Below are positions 27,592 to 48,440 of a DNA stretch of 64,000 nucleotides, in pieces. The first letter of the stretch is position 1. Every line of letters starts with the position of its first letter. The DNA lies in assembly GCA_964057225.1 (NCBI GenBank), contig OZ059900.1:6200001-6264000 (forward strand). The letters are read 5' to 3'. The notes beneath the pieces were generated by a model. The model worked only from the letters and a program-made list of their open reading frames with translations. It searched no databases and was not told the origin of the DNA. The translations under genes were made by a program, and so were the position numbers. Origin of the DNA: Auanema rhodensis (lineage: Eukaryota > Animalia > Nematoda).

Positions 27592-30377
27592 TTACAAGAA
27601 TTTTTTTACATCAACTTCTGGATCCTTGGTATCTTCAAATTTGAATTCACGGAAGAAAGAATAAACGCTACTTGTCAATTTTTGTTTTTGATGAAAAATT
27701 TTAATCAAATGTTGGACTGCGCTAAAATGTTTATTATTCTATTTTATATTTCTTCTAATTCAAAATACCTTCGAATTGTGATAGTGACGTATTTCGTTCC
27801 GGTTTCTTTACCCAAGTGTGGCTCTAGTTTCACGGTGCAGAATGTTCTTTTAAAGAAATGAAGTGAACGAATTTTTCTTTTACATAGTTGCACATTAATA
27901 AGTTCGTGAAACTTTTTCAAGCAAAATACCTATGAGATAAGAAATATAGTGAAAAAATATTTTTCTACTTACAATAGCTCGTGTTTGACTGTGTTCCACA
28001 GCTTCATTAAAGAGAGCACTTCTTACATATACAAGCCGATTTGAATTGTGGAATGTAACAGTATTTTCAGCACGATTATATAGCAGTTTAATATCAATCA
28101 CAGGCTCCGAGCTAGATAGCGCAAGGCTTTAAACTAGTTTACATTATTAGAACTTACGAATCGGGAAGCGAAACTTGTATTGTTTCGCATGCAGAAGTCA
28201 ATTCTTTTGGGTTTATAGTGGTTCCAGCTACCTGCAACAACGAGCTTCATAAAATAAATTAAATTAATATGATTAAACTAACACTGAATTTTTGCATCAC
28301 CTCTAAGCCTTTACATGTGGTAATTTTACCCCAAACGGGATCTGAAAAGAGATTTGTTTACTTAAATTTTGTGAAAATGATGAGGTTTACCAAATCTTGT
28401 ACCACATCGAATATACGTCTGATTTCGAGAAGTACGCATTAAAATGGCTTGTTCGTAATATTGGCGGTATACCTTAGCGCGACCAAGAGGGAAAACAACA
28501 AGAGGATACTCTGTACTTCTCAGACAATGCAGAGAAAAGAAAGCTTCAAGTCCTTGATCTTTGATTAGTTCAACAATTTGCATGAAGTTCAAATAGCATA
28601 CACTCAACACTCTTATTGTAAACCATGTGTCTGAAATAATTTGATGACAAACCAACTTTGAGCTGCTAAGATTACGCTGAGAGTGGAACAGACAACGTGA
28701 ACTTCTTCTTCGAAAATTGCTAACTATATGTTTACATTTTATAAGCATCGACTCAAAACTTTCCAATATAGATTGGAAATCGCAAAGTTCGTATATATAT
28801 TCGAGAGTCATGTTCAAACTGTCTTCACGCAAACCGTCGTTTATTTGGCTCATGCACTTGATTATATTGTATAATGCATCAAAAATTGTATTCATATGCT
28901 GACAATGCGAACCTTAATATAATTCATAAATAATACTTACTTTCATCAGCCGATCAAATAGTTAAAACGAAACTCACAACCGCAGATAGTAATGCGGTAC
29001 ATAAGACGAGCCATTAGAGGTGGATCAAAAACCAAAAATTGTTTGTTCTTTTTCTCGACTTTTTTATTAAAATCATCTAAAAGTTTATGTACTAATAGAG
29101 TTCGAGTGCAATATTCTTCTTGTTCAATAAAAAAGTCATCTATAACAGAAACAATGTTACTGATTGAAGTGGTTCATAATGGTTACCATCAGGATGACTA
29201 TCTGGTACTGTAATTCCTGGATCCTCTCCATGATTTAGTTGATAAGCAGTTTGAATACAAGCACGATGAAGTTTATTTGGATGCGAAACATTAAGAATCT
29301 CCCTCGCAATAGTGTTGCATAACTCCTCAGAGGGCGGGTACTGAGGAGCCAAAGCTGCACATAAAAGTTCCTGTTCGGTGTACTTAGAATTCGATTTGGG
29401 TAAAAGACATTGCTCAACAGGATGAGTCGTTTCCACAATTATATCTTTGTTGTTAAGAACTTGTTGGTCTACATTAAGATCAACGGGTTTGCTACATGTA
29501 ACAACATCAGCTGTCAACTGTTCATTCCCGCTCACAGGACTACCTGGTAACTGCTCACTATTACTAACACAATCAGCTGCCAATTGCTTATTAGCGCTCA
29601 TTGGACTGACTGGTAATTCTTCATTACCACAAACGGCTGCCGTTGTTAATTCATTAACTGCTTGCACTGCGATCGTATCATCCATTAAAGTTGGTAGCTC
29701 ATCGATTGAATAAGTTTCCTCTTCCATATTATCATTCACCAAAACTTGTTGCTCTTCACTATGATCAATTGGCTCATCACGAACAGGATTAGTATTTGAT
29801 GTATTAGATATACATCCAACTAGCGAAGATGGTTGCTGTTCTAAGGAAAAAAATTCATTTACTGGTGTAGTGCTATTTGGAGAACTCAATTGCAACTCAT
29901 TAACACTGATAGGCTCAGTTGCAGCGAAAATTGCTGGTTGTTGAAACGGAACAATATTATTATTTTCTAAGCTTGCTGATTCTATATTAGACGCTGGATC
30001 ATTCATGTCAAAATAAAAAAATTCACTCATAAAATTCCTGAGTAATGGAGTTTGCATTAGAGGTAGCGTTGCTGTAGGCTCTATAAGGTATATTACAACT
30101 TCGCTCTGCTCTATGCTCTCAGTTACTCACCCTGCTGAAAAGAAGGCTCATCTATGTTCATTGCTTCTCCTTGTTCGTTTGCCTCAGAACGTTTCTTTCT
30201 TTCGTTTTCCTCTCCTAAATTCATAAGAGCAGTCTTCAACTGTATAATTCAAGTAGGTTTCTCACTTTCTTTACGTTCTAATGCCTCAAGCTGTGCTATT
30301 AATAGAGTTTCTAAATCTTCATGCCCGAGAAGGTGGAAACCGACTTTATCTGCAGGAGGTTGCCCGTCAGATTCCAT
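27592..30377 (-). CDS. Uncharacterised 778-aa protein, 10 exons: acidic low-complexity N-half with 11-aa repeats, C-terminal divergent SMAD MH2-like domain
   Basis: Exons 30377-30266, 30214-30131, 30080-29187, 29139-28978, 28912-28391, 28341-28283, 28231-28158, 28111-27973, 27929-27769, 27721-27592. All GT-AG, phases close, 2337 nt open frame MESDGQPPADK...EVDVKKFL*. Joins track ORFs 30249-30548, 29140-30057, 28362-28895 and 27895-28101. The gene model is well supported; the MH2 call is a by-eye alignment. Confidence 0.8.
29497..29661 (-). repeat. Coding tandem repeat, 5 x 33 bp (11 aa)
   Basis: AVNELTTAAVC / GNEELPVSPMS / ANKQLAADCVS / NSEQLPGSPVS / GNEQLTADVVT; 165 bp = 5 x 33; alternate units are more alike (66-bp higher order). 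Confidence 0.75.
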
Positions 30378-37894: not shown

Positions 37895-39305
37895 ATGTCT
37901 GGCCTCTGTTTGTTTTGTACCGGAGACAGCTCAGATGAGCATAAACGATCAAAAAAAATTGAAAATCAATTAGAAAAAGATAGAAAGCAGCTGAAGCGTG
38001 AAGTAAGTTACTGCGAATCCTTAATTTGAATAGAAGAAAAACTTTAATTATTAGATACGTATATTACTGTTGGGTACTGGAGAATCTGGTAAAAGTACTC
38101 TGATTAAGCAAATGAATATCATTCATGGCGCCGGAGAATTTACTGCTGATGAAGTTCGATCATATCGACAACAGATTTATCAGGTAACCAAACTACTTAA
38201 TAGATCCCGTAGTAAGTTTGTTTGCACAGAATGTGATATCAGGAATGCGTGTTCTACTTGATGCCAGACGCAAGCTTAACATACCATGGGAAATGGAAGA
38301 GCGTCAAAACAACATCGACCAAATATTAAAGTAGATTAAAAATATGTTTTATAAAAATACTATTTGTTTAAGATTTACAACCGCTGATTTATTGAAAGGA
38401 ATTGATTATACAACGTTTGTGGGCATAGCTCCAATTGTATCAGAAATGTGGAGAGATTCAGCTGTCCGCAAGACATACGATCAGCGCAACTTATTTCAAT
38501 TAGTTAGATAGTAATTATCAGTTAATTGTCATTAAAAAGTTTTTTCAGAGTGACTCTTGTCAATACTTTTTCGAGCATCTTCATCGAATTGCTCAGCCCG
38601 ATTTTTATCCCACAAATAAAGATATTCTATACTGTCGTAAAGCATCACGTGGAATCTCTGAGCACACATTTTTTATAAACCAAATACCATTCCGGTAAGT
38701 TTTTCTTGCACAACATGTTTTTATTTATCTATTCTAATTAAAGATTTATTGATGTTGGTGGTCAGAGATCACAACGACAAAAATGGTTCCAATGCTTTAC
38801 GGATATTACAAGTATACTCTTTCTGGTCGCATCAAATGAATATGATCAAGTAATTAAAATAATCTTTAATCTTTAATTTTATCTATATATTAAGGTTGTT
38901 CTTGAAGACAGACGTACTAATCGGGTAGTAGAATCACGATCAGTTTTTGAAACTATTGTTAATAATAAGGCTTTCTCGAAAGTATCAATTATTTTGTTTA
39001 TGAATAAGAGTGATCTTCTTCACGGTATTACATTGTTTGAATCGTAATCTCATTCAAATATTTCAGAAAAACTTGCCTCATCAGACATTCGACAATATTT
39101 TGCAGATTTTCAAGGAAATCAGACATCACTACGTGATGTACAATATTTTCTTGTTGATAAGTTTGAGAGCTCACGAAAAGACAGGGCTCGTCCATTTTTC
39201 TATCACTTTACAACAGCTGTTGATACCGAGAATATCCGACGAGTATTTAAAGATGTTCGAGAAACTATATTAGAACAAAATTTGCAATCACTAATGATGC
39301 ATTAA
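37895..39305 (+). CDS. gpa-12: Heterotrimeric G protein alpha subunit, G12/13 class, 8 exons, 362 aa
   Basis: Exons 37895-38002, 38055-38183, 38230-38330, 38373-38502, 38549-38694, 38744-38849, 38895-39024, 39067-39305 (introns 42-52 nt, GT-AG). G1 [10 protein letters not shown]2 RKASRG, G3 [17 protein letters not shown]4 NKSD, G5 [16 protein letters not shown]-terminus [27 protein letters not shown] and NLxxLMM are G12/13-type signatures. TTTCAG acceptor 11 nt before ATG; AATAAA at 39377. Confidence 0.95.
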
Positions 39306-39902
39306 CTTTTAAAACTACGTTGCATCTTTTTTCTGTTCATAGTTTTCAGCACTTTTTATACTTTTTTTTTCATATAAATAAATTTATAAATATATTGACA
39401 AATAAATAAGATAATTACAATATTCACCCATTCTTTTATTTTTCAATATGAAATAGTATGGGAATTTGAGATGAAATTCATTCATTCTCATTAAGTTGTG
39501 AATTATTCTCATAAGTAACAATTACTACTTGCTTTACAAACAGTTAAATTTATAAAATACAATATTGTGATCTGCTGCTTATGGAATTAATAAAAACATA
39601 ACAAAAAGATATAAAAATTGGAAAGGTTATAATTATTCAAAAAATACAGAGAATTTAGAATATAATCCTAACAAGATGAAATAAAGTAACATGATGAGAT
39701 AAAACAGAATTATGAGTGAAAAAAAACTGTGAGATAACTAGCAAATGATGATAACTTGATATTTTCTTTGGAGAATGAATTACACATTAGAATTCATTCA
39801 TTTTTCTTCTCTAAAGCAGAATTGGAAAGATATTTTATTTACTAAAACTTATAGGAAATCGTTGAAAACCTAAATCTTACTTACGTTTTATAATATTGAG
39901 AT

Positions 39903-41174
39903 TCAATTTGTGAGAAAAATTTCTTCGTTTGAATTCTCAGATTTTTTCTACAATGAAAATATAATGAGTAATACAAAAAATCTCAAATCTTACTGGGTTG
40001 CAAAAAAATGCGGTTCCTGCGAAAAAAGCAAGCATTATGATACCGGCAAATACTATAAATACAATAATATATATAAGTTATGCCTTCCTAGATTATTTAA
40101 CTAATTATTGAAGTTTTGTCATTTTCCGCGGTTTTCGAATTTTGAATATTGGAATACTCACAGTTCTTACCATGCCATCCTTTGGGACATCTGAAAATCA
40201 TATTCATGCGATTTGAAAAAATATGATAATATCAAAATTTCAAAAAACTCGCAAACAAATTGGCATGTTTTCGAAATTGACGTAGCATGCATTGGAATGG
40301 AGACAAGATTGTTTTTGCTCCTCAGTACAGTTCGTAGCTCCTCGCTCGACACTAACGTTTTTTAAAACCGAATCAAACAGCCTAATAGTCGCTCTATCTT
40401 CTCCCTGCAATTATACTAATTGTTGAGGAGAATTAACAATATATATGGATGTTAAAGTGAAAAAGATGATAAACTCACATGTACACATACATATACTCCA
40501 GAAAAATTATTATTAAATAAATAAGTAAAACGTAACATTGAATAACTACTGAAAAAGAATTATATTAAAGTCTTTTTATAATGTTTTGTATATTTAACAA
40601 ATAATTTTTATTGTTTTTTGGCAGAAATTATAATATAAATGAATGATCAGCTTTAACTTTTTGAGCAATGCTTGAAACGTCACACTGTATTGATTTTTTG
40701 ATAAAATTCGAGACAATTCTTACTTAATCAAGCACAAGAAAATTTGATTAGAATGGGAAAAACTTGATTTCTTTTTTTAAAATGAACAAAACTTACTTTA
40801 TAATATCTATTCTTTCATATACATTATTACTGAAATTAATATCTCGACCATTAAATTCCCATTCATATTCTCGTATATGTTTAAAATTTTTAAGATTACA
40901 ACATATTTCTATTTCTGTACCATTATTTACAGATCTTAGTTCACCTCCACTAAGAGTATCTGGAAAAAAAATCTATGAAGGCATGAATGTGAATAATTCA
41001 ATTAAAAAAACTATAAAATAACAGCATTTCAAAAGTAAAATGAATAGTTTGAACAACTATTGAAGAAAACTTACTTGATATTATTAATTTTAATGGTCCA
41101 GAACTAGTTGGCATTATCAATATGTAATACATTAATAGAGTAAATTTGTTGAATACAGGACGATGGGAAATCAT
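39903..41174 (-). CDS. Ig-domain + EGF-domain single-pass membrane protein (neuregulin/Vein-like, IGEG/SISS-1 type), 7 exons, about 225 aa
   Basis: Exons 41174-41075, 40959-40797, 40548-40479, 40404-40253, 40190-40102, 40052-39994, 39947-39903. Signal-like N-terminus; Ig motifs VNNGTEIEICC, YEWEFNG, NFSGVYVC; EGF motif CTEEQKQSCLHSNACYVNFENMPICLCPKGWHGKNC; TM IIIFAGIIMLAFFAGTAFF. Needs a GC donor (GCGAGT at 40252). C-terminus uncertain. Confidence 0.85.
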
Positions 41175-41971
41175 TAGTTGGGTAGTGAATTAACGCTATC
41201 AGTATTATAATTTTCTCTTCGTTTTATCGCCCAGTCTGCTTTCCCGCCGTGCGTTGTGGAATTTTCTAGAATACTATCTACAATTTTCAAATTAACGAAT
41301 TTAGAATAGATATATTTTTTTTATGTTCCGTCAAAGGTTTAGTAGATAAATGACAATGATACACCAAGAGAAATGATAAACAATAAACAGTACGGCAACA
41401 AAAAGCAACAACATGTGTGTTGCAGATGCTCAAACAATATGAAAAATCTTAAAATGGAATAGCTAAGGAGGAGTAACATGGATGTTTGTCATCAAGAATC
41501 ATGAATAAATAGCATGATGTAGGCGTTTCAAGTTGATTCAGATGACAGAATAGTTAATGGTATCACTATATATTCGTTTTCTTTATATCTGCGATTTTAG
41601 TTGAACTCTTTTGTGTCCTATCATCTTTCAACAAATTTTAAGTTTTATTTACGCAAAACGTCTTAACTATGGGATTTTCCATATGACTCATAGCAAATGG
41701 ACATATCAAGGACAATTTTCCCTCTTTTTCGTTTTTCTTTTCATTTCTCCGAATACGCAATATCAAATACAATAGAATATTTGAAAAATGGTTTCTCACT
41801 CAGAGGACCTTTGTGATAAAGAACAGTTTATCAGTATCACTTGTTTGTATGAACTTGTAAAATATTTCATGACATCATTCTATTGTTTTAAAAGTAATTG
41901 TCTTTGTTTTGTTGTACTTTTATTAATAATAAGTTGACTATTATAAGGTATTCTTAACAGAAGAATATGTT

Positions 41972-43630
41972 TCATTTTCTTAGATCAAAATCAACGGATG
42001 ATGTTTGTCCACGTCTCAGCACTACTCTCTGAAATTTAAATATGATATAATCTCATTTTAGAAACTTTGAAATCAGTTCACATGCATAAAAGCTAAAACA
42101 AACATTATTGACGCCTTGTTCGCGTGAATCGCGATAATCGATTAGTGGGTGATTGGGAGAATGCCTGAATATAAAAACTGATTATTTCTGCTGATTTAAT
42201 GTTATTATGAAATATTTCAAAATTTAATGTTCTTTTAATATTAATCCAAGTTTACAAACCTTGCAGAAATAGCTGCGGTTGCTGCTCCAGATGCTGCCGC
42301 GGGGTATCGTCGTGAACTGAGCTTTGGTGTTGGATAGTTGTCCCAAGAAGACTCAATATCCGGTCGTGATTTGTATTCTGGCTCAGGTGATATAGCTGCT
42401 GTTCGAATTTTGCCGTGCTGATATTCTTCCCAGGTTAATGGCTGGCTATCAATGGAACGTGACTCAACAAACGTAGGTGTTTCTGAATAAAATTTAATTG
42501 ATCTATAATTTTGCTCACTTAGTGATCAAAGTGTACACAAAAGAATTCGAAATGTTTGATCAAAAAATTAAAGAAGTGACATCATTTAACAAATACAACG
42601 TTTATTTGCTCAATGATTAAAGAGGGGTATACCTTCACGTGGAGGGCACTTGCAATATCCACCATCTGCACCGGGCTGTCCACGACGACCTGGCAGCCCG
42701 CGTAATCCGTCGATGCCTGGGTCTCCCGGTTCACCTTCGTGTCCAGGCAAACCTTCTGGTCCTGCAATTGTAAAAAAAGGTGCTTTCTGAATAATTTTAA
42801 GAGCAATACCTGGAGCGGTTGGAATGCCATTTTCTCCAGGATCACCTCGAGGTCCTTGAAAACCAGGTAATCCAGGGGGACCTTGAGGGCCAGGTAGTCC
42901 AATTAGTTGAACAGCATCTTGTCCTGGTTCACCTTTTGCTCCCTATTTTTTATTTGTTATGTAATTATTTTATTGTTTAGCTACTTTTTGTCCCGTATAG
43001 CCATTTTGACCACGTTCTCCTGTTTCTCCAGGCAGTCCTGGATAGCTTCTTCCATCTTTTCCAGGGATTCCTGGTTTTCCCGGTTTACCGGGTTCTCCTT
43101 TTTCTCCAGGAAGGCCATCAGCTCCTCGTCGACCTGCCGGACACGGAGGGCAAAACGTTTCACCTACAAGATCAACTCCACTTATTCCTGGCTGTCCAGG
43201 TCTACCAGGGCGGCCGTCATAAGCACGCTCGCCAGGTGGACCTGGAGGACCTCTTTCCCCTCGTGGACATTGAATTACAGTACAATCAAAAACATAGATA
43301 ATAACAAAGAAATAAATTTTACTATTATTACCACAAATATAAGCATTTCGCCGACTAAATGCTGTTCTTCCTCTTGGATAAATAGATTCACGTTTCAAAC
43401 GAATGTTTTCTTCCAATTCCATATGATCATCCTTAACACATAGTTATGATGAAAACTATTAATGAAAGATTTACCTTCATGAGATCCAATTCCTTTTGAA
43501 TTTCGTCTCGAAAGTTGCTCGCATCTGCATTCAAAAATATATGCAATGATATGAACATGATCATTGAACATATTGACAGTAACGAGGCAGCACGGTAGGC
43601 ATTATTCAAAGATTCGATGTTATCTTTCAT
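41972..43630 (-). CDS. Nematode cuticle collagen with extended non-collagenous C-terminal tail, about 386 aa
   Basis: Exons 43630-43475, 43431-43332, 43286-42985, 42942-42810, 42761-42633, 42482-42260, 42164-42104, 42028-41972. N-terminal hydrophobic anchor and coiled region, RLKR furin-type site, CDC...CP cysteines, interrupted Gly-X-Y blocks, CPPCP, terminal YCKCP. Intron 43287-43331 lacks an AG but is in frame. Confidence 0.93.
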
Positions 43631-44752: not shown

Positions 44753-47700
44753 TTACTTTGAAACATCAATGTAGGCGGGAGCCACGGATACAACATCTGT
44801 ATCAGCTAAGCGATCGAGAGAATTATCGCTGCTGGAGTTTTTGCGATCGATGGAGGCACGCTGAAAAAATTACAAAAACATAATAATAAGTATACAAATG
44901 TTATTATTATTTATAGGTTATTGTCATGCAAAATGTAAAGCTATTTTACCTCTCCGTCGTCACTTGTACGAGTGTCTTCCTCTTCTTCTTCTTGGCAGAA
45001 CTCATTTTCAGTCTCATTTAATGTATTCTTAGCCCATCCACGAACTATATAACAAAAAAAATTACTTTCATATTTATTTCTCTTTTTTGAATATTGAGAC
45101 TTGAAGCTTATTTCTTAAATTTATTTGAATTTTCTTTCAGTTTCTATGATTCTTTAATCTTTGCTCAAATATGCCTTCAAAAGATATTTCAACTCATTCG
45201 CACTAAAACCAGTTTATGTTTAAAGGTCATATACGTTCATTTTCATTCTTATTCCCTCTCTTACTTTTTTTCTTACAATAATTTATAAGCAAATGCCATT
45301 TCAATTGGGTACTCAAACTTTTACAGGAAATGGCATCATGAATCGAATTTTTGAAGTCTTAGATGGGAAAAGGTCAGCCTGAGCTTATTGATGCACTTGA
45401 AAACTACATGCTGTTCTATGTTTTTTTTAAGTTTATGTCATCCAAATGAAATAAAAATCATTGTTACCTTGAATTCCTACACTTCCCTGTCTGCTGAGAG
45501 TTTCTGTACGTGTTGGCTTAATAACAGAAGCATGATCAACAGTGCTTTCATGTGGAAGAAGCTGCATTGGTGAGCGGAAGAAATAGAATGAAGGGTAATA
45601 ATACAAGTTGTAGCATGATGATGCATATATATCAGCATATCTGAAATTATTGCAAATAGATAATAAACTATTGATTAACTATACATATTGCATATACTTT
45701 CTAGCGAGTTTTACAATAACTTGAATATATAATTGAAAATTGTATAAAACTTTAGAACGTTGTTTGAATGAGCAATTTTAGGAAAAAGTTGAAAGGGGAA
45801 ACAACATTATGCAAGGTGAAAAATGTTTTTATATTCTAAATTCAAAAACCAAACATTCTACTAATTAAAATATATTATTAAGTGAACATTTGGCTTTTAG
45901 CTTCAACATGTTGGCAAAAAACTGAATATATCAAAGAGCCGTAAAGGTTAAAGTTAAAACTTCTACAAAGATATTAACTAATTTTGGTGTCGAATTTCGT
46001 AAATTAGCATTCTAGTTTGGTTTCTAATTTCATAAAATACTATTTACCTCTCCACCTGTGATGCAAAGAATGTGGTACGGGAGCCAGTGCGGAACAATGA
46101 TCCCAAAACACTGTATTCTTCATCCATTTCATGAGTAATTTTCTAAAATATTTATTATATGAACAGTATTTTCTGTCGTTTTTTCTTACACGAAGATTAG
46201 AAACAATATCTCCCAGATCAGGCTTTTCTGTTGAGCATGCATCTAATTGCTTGTAAATGTTGCAAAGACGAATCTCAAGCTCATCAAGTTGCTCAAACAA
46301 GGGTCTGCGATCAGTCCAAACTGTGAGCTCATGCTCAAGTTCTGGAACAATCAAGAAAGTTCTCCATCCACGAGATTTCTTCGATCTGGAAATGAGCAAA
46401 GTACTATATTTTCGTAGCGAAGGTTACCTTAAAACATCTCCAAAAATGTGATCTCCAATGTAAAGCACATCTTTTCCACGTGCTTTAACAATTTTATGAA
46501 AAACATTGCTGTTTCCTAAAGTATTTCATTACATATGGTTTTTTGGTTATTTTTGTACTCACCTCCAGAATACACAACTCCTTCTCTAAGGGGTCCGTAA
46601 TGAATACCTAGTTTATGAGCTCCTGTATCAGTATTAACCTAAAATATGTTTATCCTTATTGTTCACTGAAATATTAGCTTACCTCACGGAAAACAGTTCC
46701 ATCGGCAAACCATTTGGGTTTACATGCATCAACAACGATGATGTTGAAATAGCTTCTCCAGGTGTCGCCCAATAAGTATGTCATCATAACCTAAAAGATT
46801 CATCCTGTTTAACTCAATTAATGATTAGCTGAACATACATTGGTATAATTCCAGTCACTGTTAGTTAGTAAGAAAGTTTGTTTTCCATGCTCTTTCAATT
46901 GCTTAAGCATTGGTGCGGCACGAGCATCCTTTTCAACATAAAGATGTGGCTCATTCATTACCATTTGCTTCATTTCACTCTTAAAATTGTTATACCATGT
47001 TATTAAATATCTTCTTTTTAATTTACTTCAATATGAACCCAATCAATAGCTTTGCGACAATCCTGGAAGATGGAACGATATGACATAAGCACATCTCCTC
47101 CACGAAGTCCAGTGCGATCCTCTAATCTAAAAATATATTATTAATCTCTAAAATCTTCATATCTGTCGATGTTGTTAATTGCATGTTCCTTATCATTCCA
47201 AAAATTTTTTTTGAAAAAAACTCAATTAATCCGTATTCCGTCACTTTTTTTCACAAATCAATCTTAGCATTATGACGTAGATATTCTATCAAAGTTAAAT
47301 CTTTTTTCTTTGATGTTTATAAAAGAAAAAAGCTATCAAAAAGTGAAATTCTCAGTATATAGTGCTGCTGATGATGATGGCGCCATTTTATAAAAACAGT
47401 TTGAATATCTTTTTTAATGATTATAGCTGTTATCACCGATATAATGGTCGTGAACTTAATCATTTTGAACAATGACACTTCGATATGATTTTTGGAGACA
47501 TTGAAATTCGTTATCAGGAAAAATAGGCCAGGGGTATAGGATAATGAAAATGCTTCTTGATAGCTTCTGATCGTCTCGTATAATTTATTTGATAGCTTTT
47601 GATATCGTTGATTTCATTTGCTGCATAAGTAAACGTTTTGTTCACATTTTAAACACTGGGCAACCAAAAATTAATACTTTTGCGACCAATTAGGGATATT

Positions 47701-48440
47701 ACTATCAGTTTTTATTTTATTATATCCTGCTTCTGCTCAGCTATATTGTACTTAATGTGTATAGTCAACTCACGTTGTATAATCTGGATGATTATCAAAG
47801 AAATCAATCAAAAGTGAAATCAAGTGAGTTTCTGGCAAATTGAAAAGGGTATTGAGTACGAAAACGCGGCCTTCAGATAATTGAAGATACTTATTTGGAT
47901 ACATTTCTTCAATATCAGATCTAAAATATTGAATTAATCATTGCTTTCAATTTTCAAAAATCCTACGCTTTAAGGAATTTTTGTCCGTGCATTCCAAGAA
48001 GGATATTTCCAAATCCATCGACTTTTAATAAATTTCCATATTGGTAATCAAACCATAATCCTACAAAGAAGTAGTTAGTCTTCAACAAATATCTTCTTTT
48101 CCAACCTCTCACGGGAAAGATAGGATTGTATTCTAGTTTCTTAATCTCTTGTGGATAACCGAGCTTGATGAGGTGATCAACAGCTAAATTGAATACCAAA
48201 TATTCGAGTTGAGGAGATTTGTATTCTAGAATTCATAATATTTCTGTGAAGCAATTTGCTAATTATTCCTTACGAATCAAAGTATAATCCATGTCAAATC
48301 CAAAAAATTTAATCTTTTCCAATCTCAGATTACGATTAACAAAGATTCTAAAATTTTTCTCATGATTCACACCAAACATTTCTATTTTCAAACCTCTTTG
48401 CGGGTTCACGTTTGTACGCTGATGTTCTGATAGCTGCCAT
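44753..48440 (-). CDS. NT5C2: Cytosolic purine (IMP/GMP) 5'-nucleotidase cN-II, HAD superfamily, 15 exons, 553 aa
   Basis: Exons 48440-48394, 48347-48274, 48225-48106, 48060-47967, 47920-47774, 47126-47027, 46979-46839, 46790-46683, 46638-46563, 46515-46428, 46385-46190, 46142-46048, 45640-45468, 45044-44950, 44860-44753; 1662 nt open. Motif I GFDMDYTL, motif II LLTNSD, ACKP, motif [11 protein letters not shown], then [32 protein letters not shown] and an acidic EEEED tail, all cN-II hallmarks. Symbol is the vertebrate orthologue name. Confidence 0.95.

Follow-up and report, generated by a model that had tools for sequence, protein, structure and literature searches.

It was only in 2024-2025 that ligands of the worm EGF receptor with an Ig and an EGF domain came to be recognised, namely SISS-1, which acts in damage-induced sleep, and IGEG-2, which has no known endogenous role. 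SISS-1 is shed by the ADAM17-type protease ADM-4, signals via LET-23 and is suspected by its authors to be a low-affinity ligand (PMC11686035). IGEG-2 (F48C5.1) carries an Ig domain at residues 46-117, an EGF domain at 127-168 and a transmembrane helix at 188-210, and its overexpression causes LET-23-dependent vulval hyperinduction and sleep, with the Ig domain required (PMC12485627). EGF-family ligand genes bear a near-invariant mark, an intron that separates Cys4 from Cys5 in the EGF motif (PMC11686035, PMC12485627, PMC1618406), and both siss-1 and igeg-2 have it (PMC11686035, PMC12485627). The mark sets the ligands apart from other EGF modules, although it is also found in mucins, meprins and IMPG2. 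EGFR ligands have the published consensus CX7CX4-5CX10-13CXCX8GXRC. The arginine before Cys6 is invariant in verified EGFR ligands, where it contacts Asp355 of the receptor, and is replaced only in the tomoregulins (Stein and Staros, PMC1618406); its change to histidine in human EGF (Arg41His) reduces binding (PMC1618406).

In the window analysed here, a stretch of 64,000 nucleotides from the nematode Auanema rhodensis, the minus strand carries a gene with a coding sequence bounded exactly by 41174 and 39903. Its ATG begins at 41174, its TGA stop covers 39905-39903, and RNA contigs show that it has seven coding exons and that its 3' UTR is spliced. The region is AT-rich (about 29% GC), with short open stretches on the minus strand flanked by nematode-type splice signals. 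The RNA evidence consists of assembled contigs, not raw reads, from four runs (X1 to X4) of one study, which count as one independent source. These runs, labelled only as possible RNA, matched exonic parts of the stretch, and their contigs were mapped on 38500-42500. The runs behave as transcriptomes, contig depth being zero in the introns other than intron 4 and between the genes at 41314-41849; the flanking genes are spliced in the same four runs' contigs as well.

All parts of the transcript lie on the minus strand. The contigs give exact coding joints, with GT..AG ends except at intron 4, namely 41075/40959, 40797/40548, 40479/40404, 40253/40190, 40102/40052 and 39994/39947, the first three of which are present in all four runs. 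Upstream of the ATG is a 5' UTR of at least 93 nt (41175..41267), the contigs of X1 and X3 starting at 41267, and no spliced-leader letters were seen. Coding exon 1 (41075..41174), whose joint is found in every run, encodes the initiating methionine and a signal-peptide-like N-terminus. An Ig-type domain is divided between exon 2 (40797..40959), which has joints on both sides and encodes the first half (EICC...EYEWEFNGRDI), and exon 3 (40479..40548), whose phase fits and which encodes the second half up to FSGVYVC, ending in Cys109. Exon 4 (40253..40404) carries a linker and EGF Cys1-Cys4 (CTEEQKQSCLHSNACYVNFENMPIC), and exon 5 (40102..40190) carries EGF Cys5-Cys6 (CPKGWHGKNC) and the membrane-adjacent stalk, both with RNA joints. 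The transmembrane helix is encoded by exon 6 (39994..40052), bounded by the joints 40102/40052 and 39994/39947, and the last 14 residues of the tail by exon 7 (39885..39947), which also holds the TGA and 18 nt of 3' UTR. From 5' to 3', the introns of the coding region measure 115, 248, 74, 62, 49 and 46 nt, and the RNA uses two unusual donors, GCGAGT in intron 4 and GTTAAA in intron 5. A candidate third exon at 40684-40599 (VTFQALLKKLKLIIHLYYNFCQ) was rejected: it is out of phase with exon 4, and according to the RNA joints the true exon lies at 40548-40479.

The intron in the 3' UTR begins just 18 nt past the stop codon and has two alternative acceptors. It is removed as a 43-nt intron (39842..39884, joint 39885/39841) in X1, X2 and X4 and as a 74-nt intron (39811..39884, joint 39885/39810) in X3. 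The last 3' UTR exon spans 39634..39841, with contigs ending at 39634-39662.

Joined by script, the coding exons total 678 nt and form a single open frame of 225 codons. The gene is real and expressed. We draw this conclusion because of the RNA joints and a frame that stays intact through seven exons, and not from the Cys pattern alone: the four-Cys N-subdomain pattern has one match in the six frames of the window, versus 0.2 per composition-preserving shuffle, and is by itself weak evidence for a gene. The earlier note, made from the DNA letters alone, had proposed a seven-exon gene at 39903-41174 encoding a signal peptide, an Ig domain, an EGF motif, a transmembrane helix and a short tail, and had named RNA-seq junctions as a check. 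The proposal holds to the exact ATG and stop, and spliced contigs of the four runs supply every coding junction.

On the same strand and directly upstream lies a cuticle-type collagen gene (about 41960-43630, minus; Pfam Collagen), also represented by spliced contigs. Past the usual ...GGYCKCPPR end it splices to an exon at 42484-42259 that adds a non-collagen C-terminal extension of about 76 residues, which has no Pfam match, and two further introns follow this exon at 42258-42164 and 42103-42029. On the other side, a G-protein alpha subunit gene (about 37980-39349, plus strand; Pfam G-alpha), with at least three short GT..AG introns in the contigs, is convergent with the Ig-EGF gene, the 3' ends being about 300 nt apart. 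Farther off on the minus strand are exons of the cytosolic 5'-nucleotidase family (46040-46399 and 47963-48199; Pfam 5_nucleotid, E=1e-10 for the first exon) and a 305-codon open frame (29140-30057) for a low-complexity, probably disordered protein, which had no Pfam match and no homologue in a word-indexed protein search.

The script translation orders the protein as a signal-like N-terminus, one Ig-type domain, one EGF motif, a stalk, a membrane helix and a tail. By translation and hydropathy, residues 1-26 resemble a signal peptide, with basic residues H4, R5 and K10, an 11-residue hydrophobic run (FTLLMYYILIM) and then PTSSGP. The Ig-type domain covers approximately residues 40-113 and is marked by Cys53/Cys54, C54-x12-W67 and S-G-V-Y-V-C109, with a Cys-Cys span of 55 residues; Pfam gave Ig_3 on exon 2 at E=0.025, below the family cut-off, and no Ig match on exon 3, which encodes the second half. 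A stalk of 15 residues separates Cys6 from a hydrophobic segment of 22 residues, called from hydropathy (maximum 1.85) as a transmembrane helix at about 188-209. The cytoplasmic tail of 15 residues begins K-K, and the ectodomain has five N-glycosylation sequons.

Two cysteine placements in this protein stand apart. Cys53 and Cys54 are adjacent at the position of the Ig B-strand (exon 2), and Cys209 lies at the inner end of the membrane helix (exon 6). The adjacent pair implies that at least one ectodomain cysteine is unpaired, and such a residue could form an intermolecular disulfide.

The EGF motif spans residues 133-173 with the spacing C137-x7-C145-x5-C151-x9-C161-x-C163-x8-C172, ending W-H-G-K-N-C. 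It follows the six-Cys framework of the ligands, C-x7-C-x4-5-C-...-C-x-C-x8-C, and as a regular expression it fits C-x-C-x2-G-W-x-G-x2-C as well as the EGF_1- and EGF_2-type patterns. By comparison with human EGF, the C-L-H after Cys2 and the aromatic residue after the Gly of the last loop would also fit ligand-type EGF motifs, as would Ile177, a hydrophobic residue five positions past Cys6 and the presumed equivalent of Leu47 in human EGF. The protein is a single-pass precursor with its EGF motif close to the membrane, as in EGF-family ligands, judging by hydropathy. Traits of structural EGF repeats are not seen here: the module stands alone rather than in tandem, it is interrupted internally by an intron instead of being bordered by introns, and the residues before Cys1 are E-R-G-A-T-N, with no calcium-binding EGF signature (D-x-D/N-E-C type). 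At two places the motif leaves the ligand consensus. The Cys3-Cys4 loop has nine residues (YVNFENMPI) where the consensus has 10-13, so that the strict pattern is unmatched, and the residue before Cys6 is Asn171 (G169-K-N171-C172) where G-x-R-C ligands have arginine.

The fourth intron (40191..40252), 62 nt long, splits the codon of Leu162 in phase 2 between Cys4 and Cys5, as verified by RNA, and ends GC..AG rather than GT..AG. It is spliced (40253/40190) in contigs of X1, X3 and X4. In X2, a 1,020-nt contig keeps it (40102-40403 unbroken) while every other intron has been removed, and this is the only form assembled from that run. Summed depths hint that the retained form occurs in X1, X3 and X4 too, a rough indication as contig depths are unfit for quantification. 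When the intron is retained, the frame stops after 165 residues (...PICLRVF*), before Cys5, Cys6, the stalk and the membrane anchor. GC-AG introns make up about 0.6% of C. elegans coding junctions, and weak GC donors have been tied to regulated splicing, let-2 being the tested case in worms. A GT donor one codon past Cys4 (CGA|GTTTTT) was considered and rejected, as it leads to a stop in the next exon and the RNA uses the GC donor. Two donors inside exon 5 that look strong (CATG|GTAAGA and AACT|GTGAGT), whose use would remove Cys6, appear in no contig.

What had been read from the letters alone about the EGF motif is thus borne out. The proposed spacing, C-x7-C-x5-C-x9-C-x-C-x8-C, is reproduced in the joined translation, the intron claimed between C4 and C5 is the 40253/40190 joint, and the third loop is one residue short, as had been said. 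The asparagine in HGKNC is there, and the invariance in verified ligands of the arginine that it replaces is confirmed in the literature (PMC1618406). The comparison of the Ig-plus-EGF layout with SISS-1/IGEG-1, IGEG-2, Vein and some neuregulins also agrees with the published layouts. The note's further reading, of a fast-evolving paralogue that could be low-affinity, a decoy or a ligand of another receptor, goes beyond these observations, and the gene may simply be the orthologue of igeg-2.

From these observations we conclude, with moderate confidence, that the locus is an expressed rhabditid gene for a 225-residue type I Ig-EGF precursor with a layout like that of IGEG-2, the shed form of which would be a putative LET-23 ligand. 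The gene would then be a new member of a class of Ig-EGF membrane precursors that is itself already known. Its product is most probably released by shedding as a putative ligand of the worm's EGF receptor, although it departs from verified ligands at two consensus features. In favor of placing it in the ligand class we counted the likeness in layout to IGEG-2 and SISS-1, the Cys4/Cys5 intron and the six-Cys framework; against it we counted the nine-residue loop, the asparagine in place of arginine, the lack of a detected relative and the generic nature of the EGF matches described below.

Under this reading, the N-terminal signal peptide would be cleaved off the precursor, and the Ig domain, predicted to be glycosylated, would be exposed outside the cell together with the single EGF motif. 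An ADAM-type membrane metalloprotease may then cleave the 15-residue stalk, releasing a soluble Ig-EGF fragment that would bind LET-23. Production of a complete EGF motif would require removal of intron 4 with its weak GC donor, and the fraction of RNA that keeps this intron would encode just the truncated product of 165 residues. The replacement of the receptor-contacting arginine by asparagine, together with a middle loop shorter by one residue, would be expected to lower or change affinity for the receptor unless compensated.

The strongest competing explanation is that the gene encodes a cell-surface Ig-EGF protein that does not signal via the EGF receptor, for example one used in adhesion or recognition, with a structural EGF module. 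In that case the Cys4/Cys5 intron would be coincidental or inherited from a common ancestor; mucins, meprins and IMPG2 likewise are non-ligands with the same splice site near a transmembrane domain (Stein and Staros, PMC1618406). The missing arginine, with its contact to receptor Asp355, and the short middle loop are consistent with such a protein, and the similarity searches bear on it as well. Homology searches, family scans and fold predictions covered single exons, and the joined protein was covered by translation, hydropathy and pattern checks. In the Protein Data Bank (PDB), exon 5, the C-terminal half of the EGF motif, best matched EGF modules of factor X (CAEGFEGKNCEFS), Notch1 and a mussel foot protein, with no ErbB ligand among the sequence matches, which shows that G-K-N-C is common in non-ligand EGF modules. 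Weighing against this, the matches are weak, spanning just 12-13 residues with E of at least 0.02; judged from their sequence, they reflect the shared pattern C-x-x-G-aromatic-x-G-x-x-C-E and are too short for classifying the domain. The absence of a calcium-binding signature ahead of Cys1 also speaks against a structural module. Furthermore, the layout of an Ig domain with one membrane-adjacent EGF motif in 225 residues is that of both C. elegans Ig-EGF proteins, and both of these act through LET-23 (PMC11686035, PMC12485627). We therefore regard a non-signalling surface protein as a serious but unlikely alternative.

The other exon-level searches returned little. A HMMER search with exon 4 (50 residues) against 1.84 billion representative proteins found just two spurious repeat proteins, unrelated to EGF. 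As the search returned no match of the gene to itself, the gene is absent from the public predictions in that library, and the library holds no relative similar enough to show with 50 residues. Neither exon 2 nor exon 4 matched any PDB entry by sequence, and the ESM Atlas gave no usable match with exon 4. Scanned exon by exon with Pfam, neither half-domain was called as EGF, and a match to GPR128_N on a single exon was judged spurious. AlphaFold2 modeled exon 4 alone with a mean pLDDT of 62.6, reaching 69-78 across the Cys1-Cys4 part, and a Foldseek comparison of this model with the PDB found no meaningful match. There are no paralogous exons elsewhere in the window.

A second alternative, which we consider rather doubtful, is that the protein is a naturally occurring variant of an EGFR ligand that has low affinity or acts as a partial agonist or an antagonist (decoy). 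Asn171 and the short loop would weaken its contact with domain III of the receptor, and retention of the intron in part of the RNA would restrict or gate how much of the complete EGF motif is made. The substitution of an invariant arginine points in this direction, since histidine at this position lowers the binding of human EGF and the arginine-less tomoregulins have an unusual receptor preference (PMC1618406), and SISS-1 has itself come under suspicion of low affinity (PMC11686035). The GC donor and the retention of intron 4 seen in the RNA would also fit. However, this ligand lineage may normally have asparagine, with compensation in the receptor, and retention observed at the level of contigs is unquantifiable and may be ordinary inefficient splicing. 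A more elaborate form of the idea, and a quite improbable one in our estimate, is that intron 4 has become a detained intron with a weak GC donor, kept in most of the steady-state RNA, and that the full sheddable ligand is made only once splicing has run to completion, as might happen following stress or in a particular stage. With its asparagine and shortened loop, the product would be a natural low-affinity or biased ligand of LET-23, and the two features together would amount to a splicing-gated, attenuated EGF signal. Finally, it is very improbable that the gene is decaying or non-functional, with poor splicing of intron 4 and an altered motif as signs of relaxed constraint: X2 did assemble the intron-retained form alone and the exon 4 HMMER search detected no relatives, but one open frame has been kept through seven exons in a stop-rich genome of 30% GC, all ten structural marks examined are intact (among them the six EGF cysteines, the Ig Cys pair, the Trp and the transmembrane helix), and the spliced form is present in three of the four runs.

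If the gene is a putative shed Ig-EGF ligand, as we favor, an expressed relative in a distant rhabditid would extend this ligand class past Caenorhabditis. The gene would also be a natural variant at a residue held invariant in verified ligands. Should its orthologues normally have arginine, it would be a natural experiment on ligand affinity; should they lack it, the rule of the invariant arginine would not apply to this ligand lineage. With a ligand role that is putative, the gene by itself leaves current understanding unchanged.

Among known systems, the tomoregulins (TMEFF1/2) share with this protein a membrane-proximal EGF motif, the ligand-type intron and the lack of arginine before Cys6, where they have His, Tyr or Gln (PMC1618406). 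Their interaction with receptors is uncertain or unusual (PMC1618406). Unlike the protein described here, they are vertebrate proteins and have follistatin modules in place of the Ig domain. The Ig isoforms of neuregulins 1 and 2 and Drosophila Vein have the layout seen here, with an Ig domain N-terminal to a single receptor-binding EGF motif, and neuregulins are made as membrane-anchored precursors, as predicted for this protein. Neuregulins and Vein are much larger, however, and exon-level searches detected no sequence similarity to them; the neuregulins in addition have long cytoplasmic tails and keep the arginine of G-x-R-C.

The C. elegans Ig-EGF proteins are closer. Similar to the arrangement here, SISS-1/IGEG-1 (F28E10.2) has an ectodomain of Ig and EGF domains, a single transmembrane helix and the Cys4/Cys5 intron. 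It differs in length and start, being 274 residues long and reported without a signal sequence (PMC11686035), compared with 225 residues and a signal-like N-terminus in A. rhodensis. IGEG-2 matches in order throughout, from a hydrophobic N-terminus through Ig, EGF and stalk to one transmembrane helix, and it too has the Cys4/Cys5 intron. To judge from the size of its cDNA, IGEG-2 is the longer protein, the tail here being just 15 residues, and the EGF span here is one residue less than the 42-residue annotated domain of IGEG-2 would suggest. The positions of the domains nonetheless nearly coincide with those published for IGEG-2, with Ig at about 40-113, EGF at 133-173 and the helix at 188-209. 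Based on this layout and on the published coordinates, our best guess is that the A. rhodensis gene is orthologous or closely related to igeg-2, a new paralogue being less likely.
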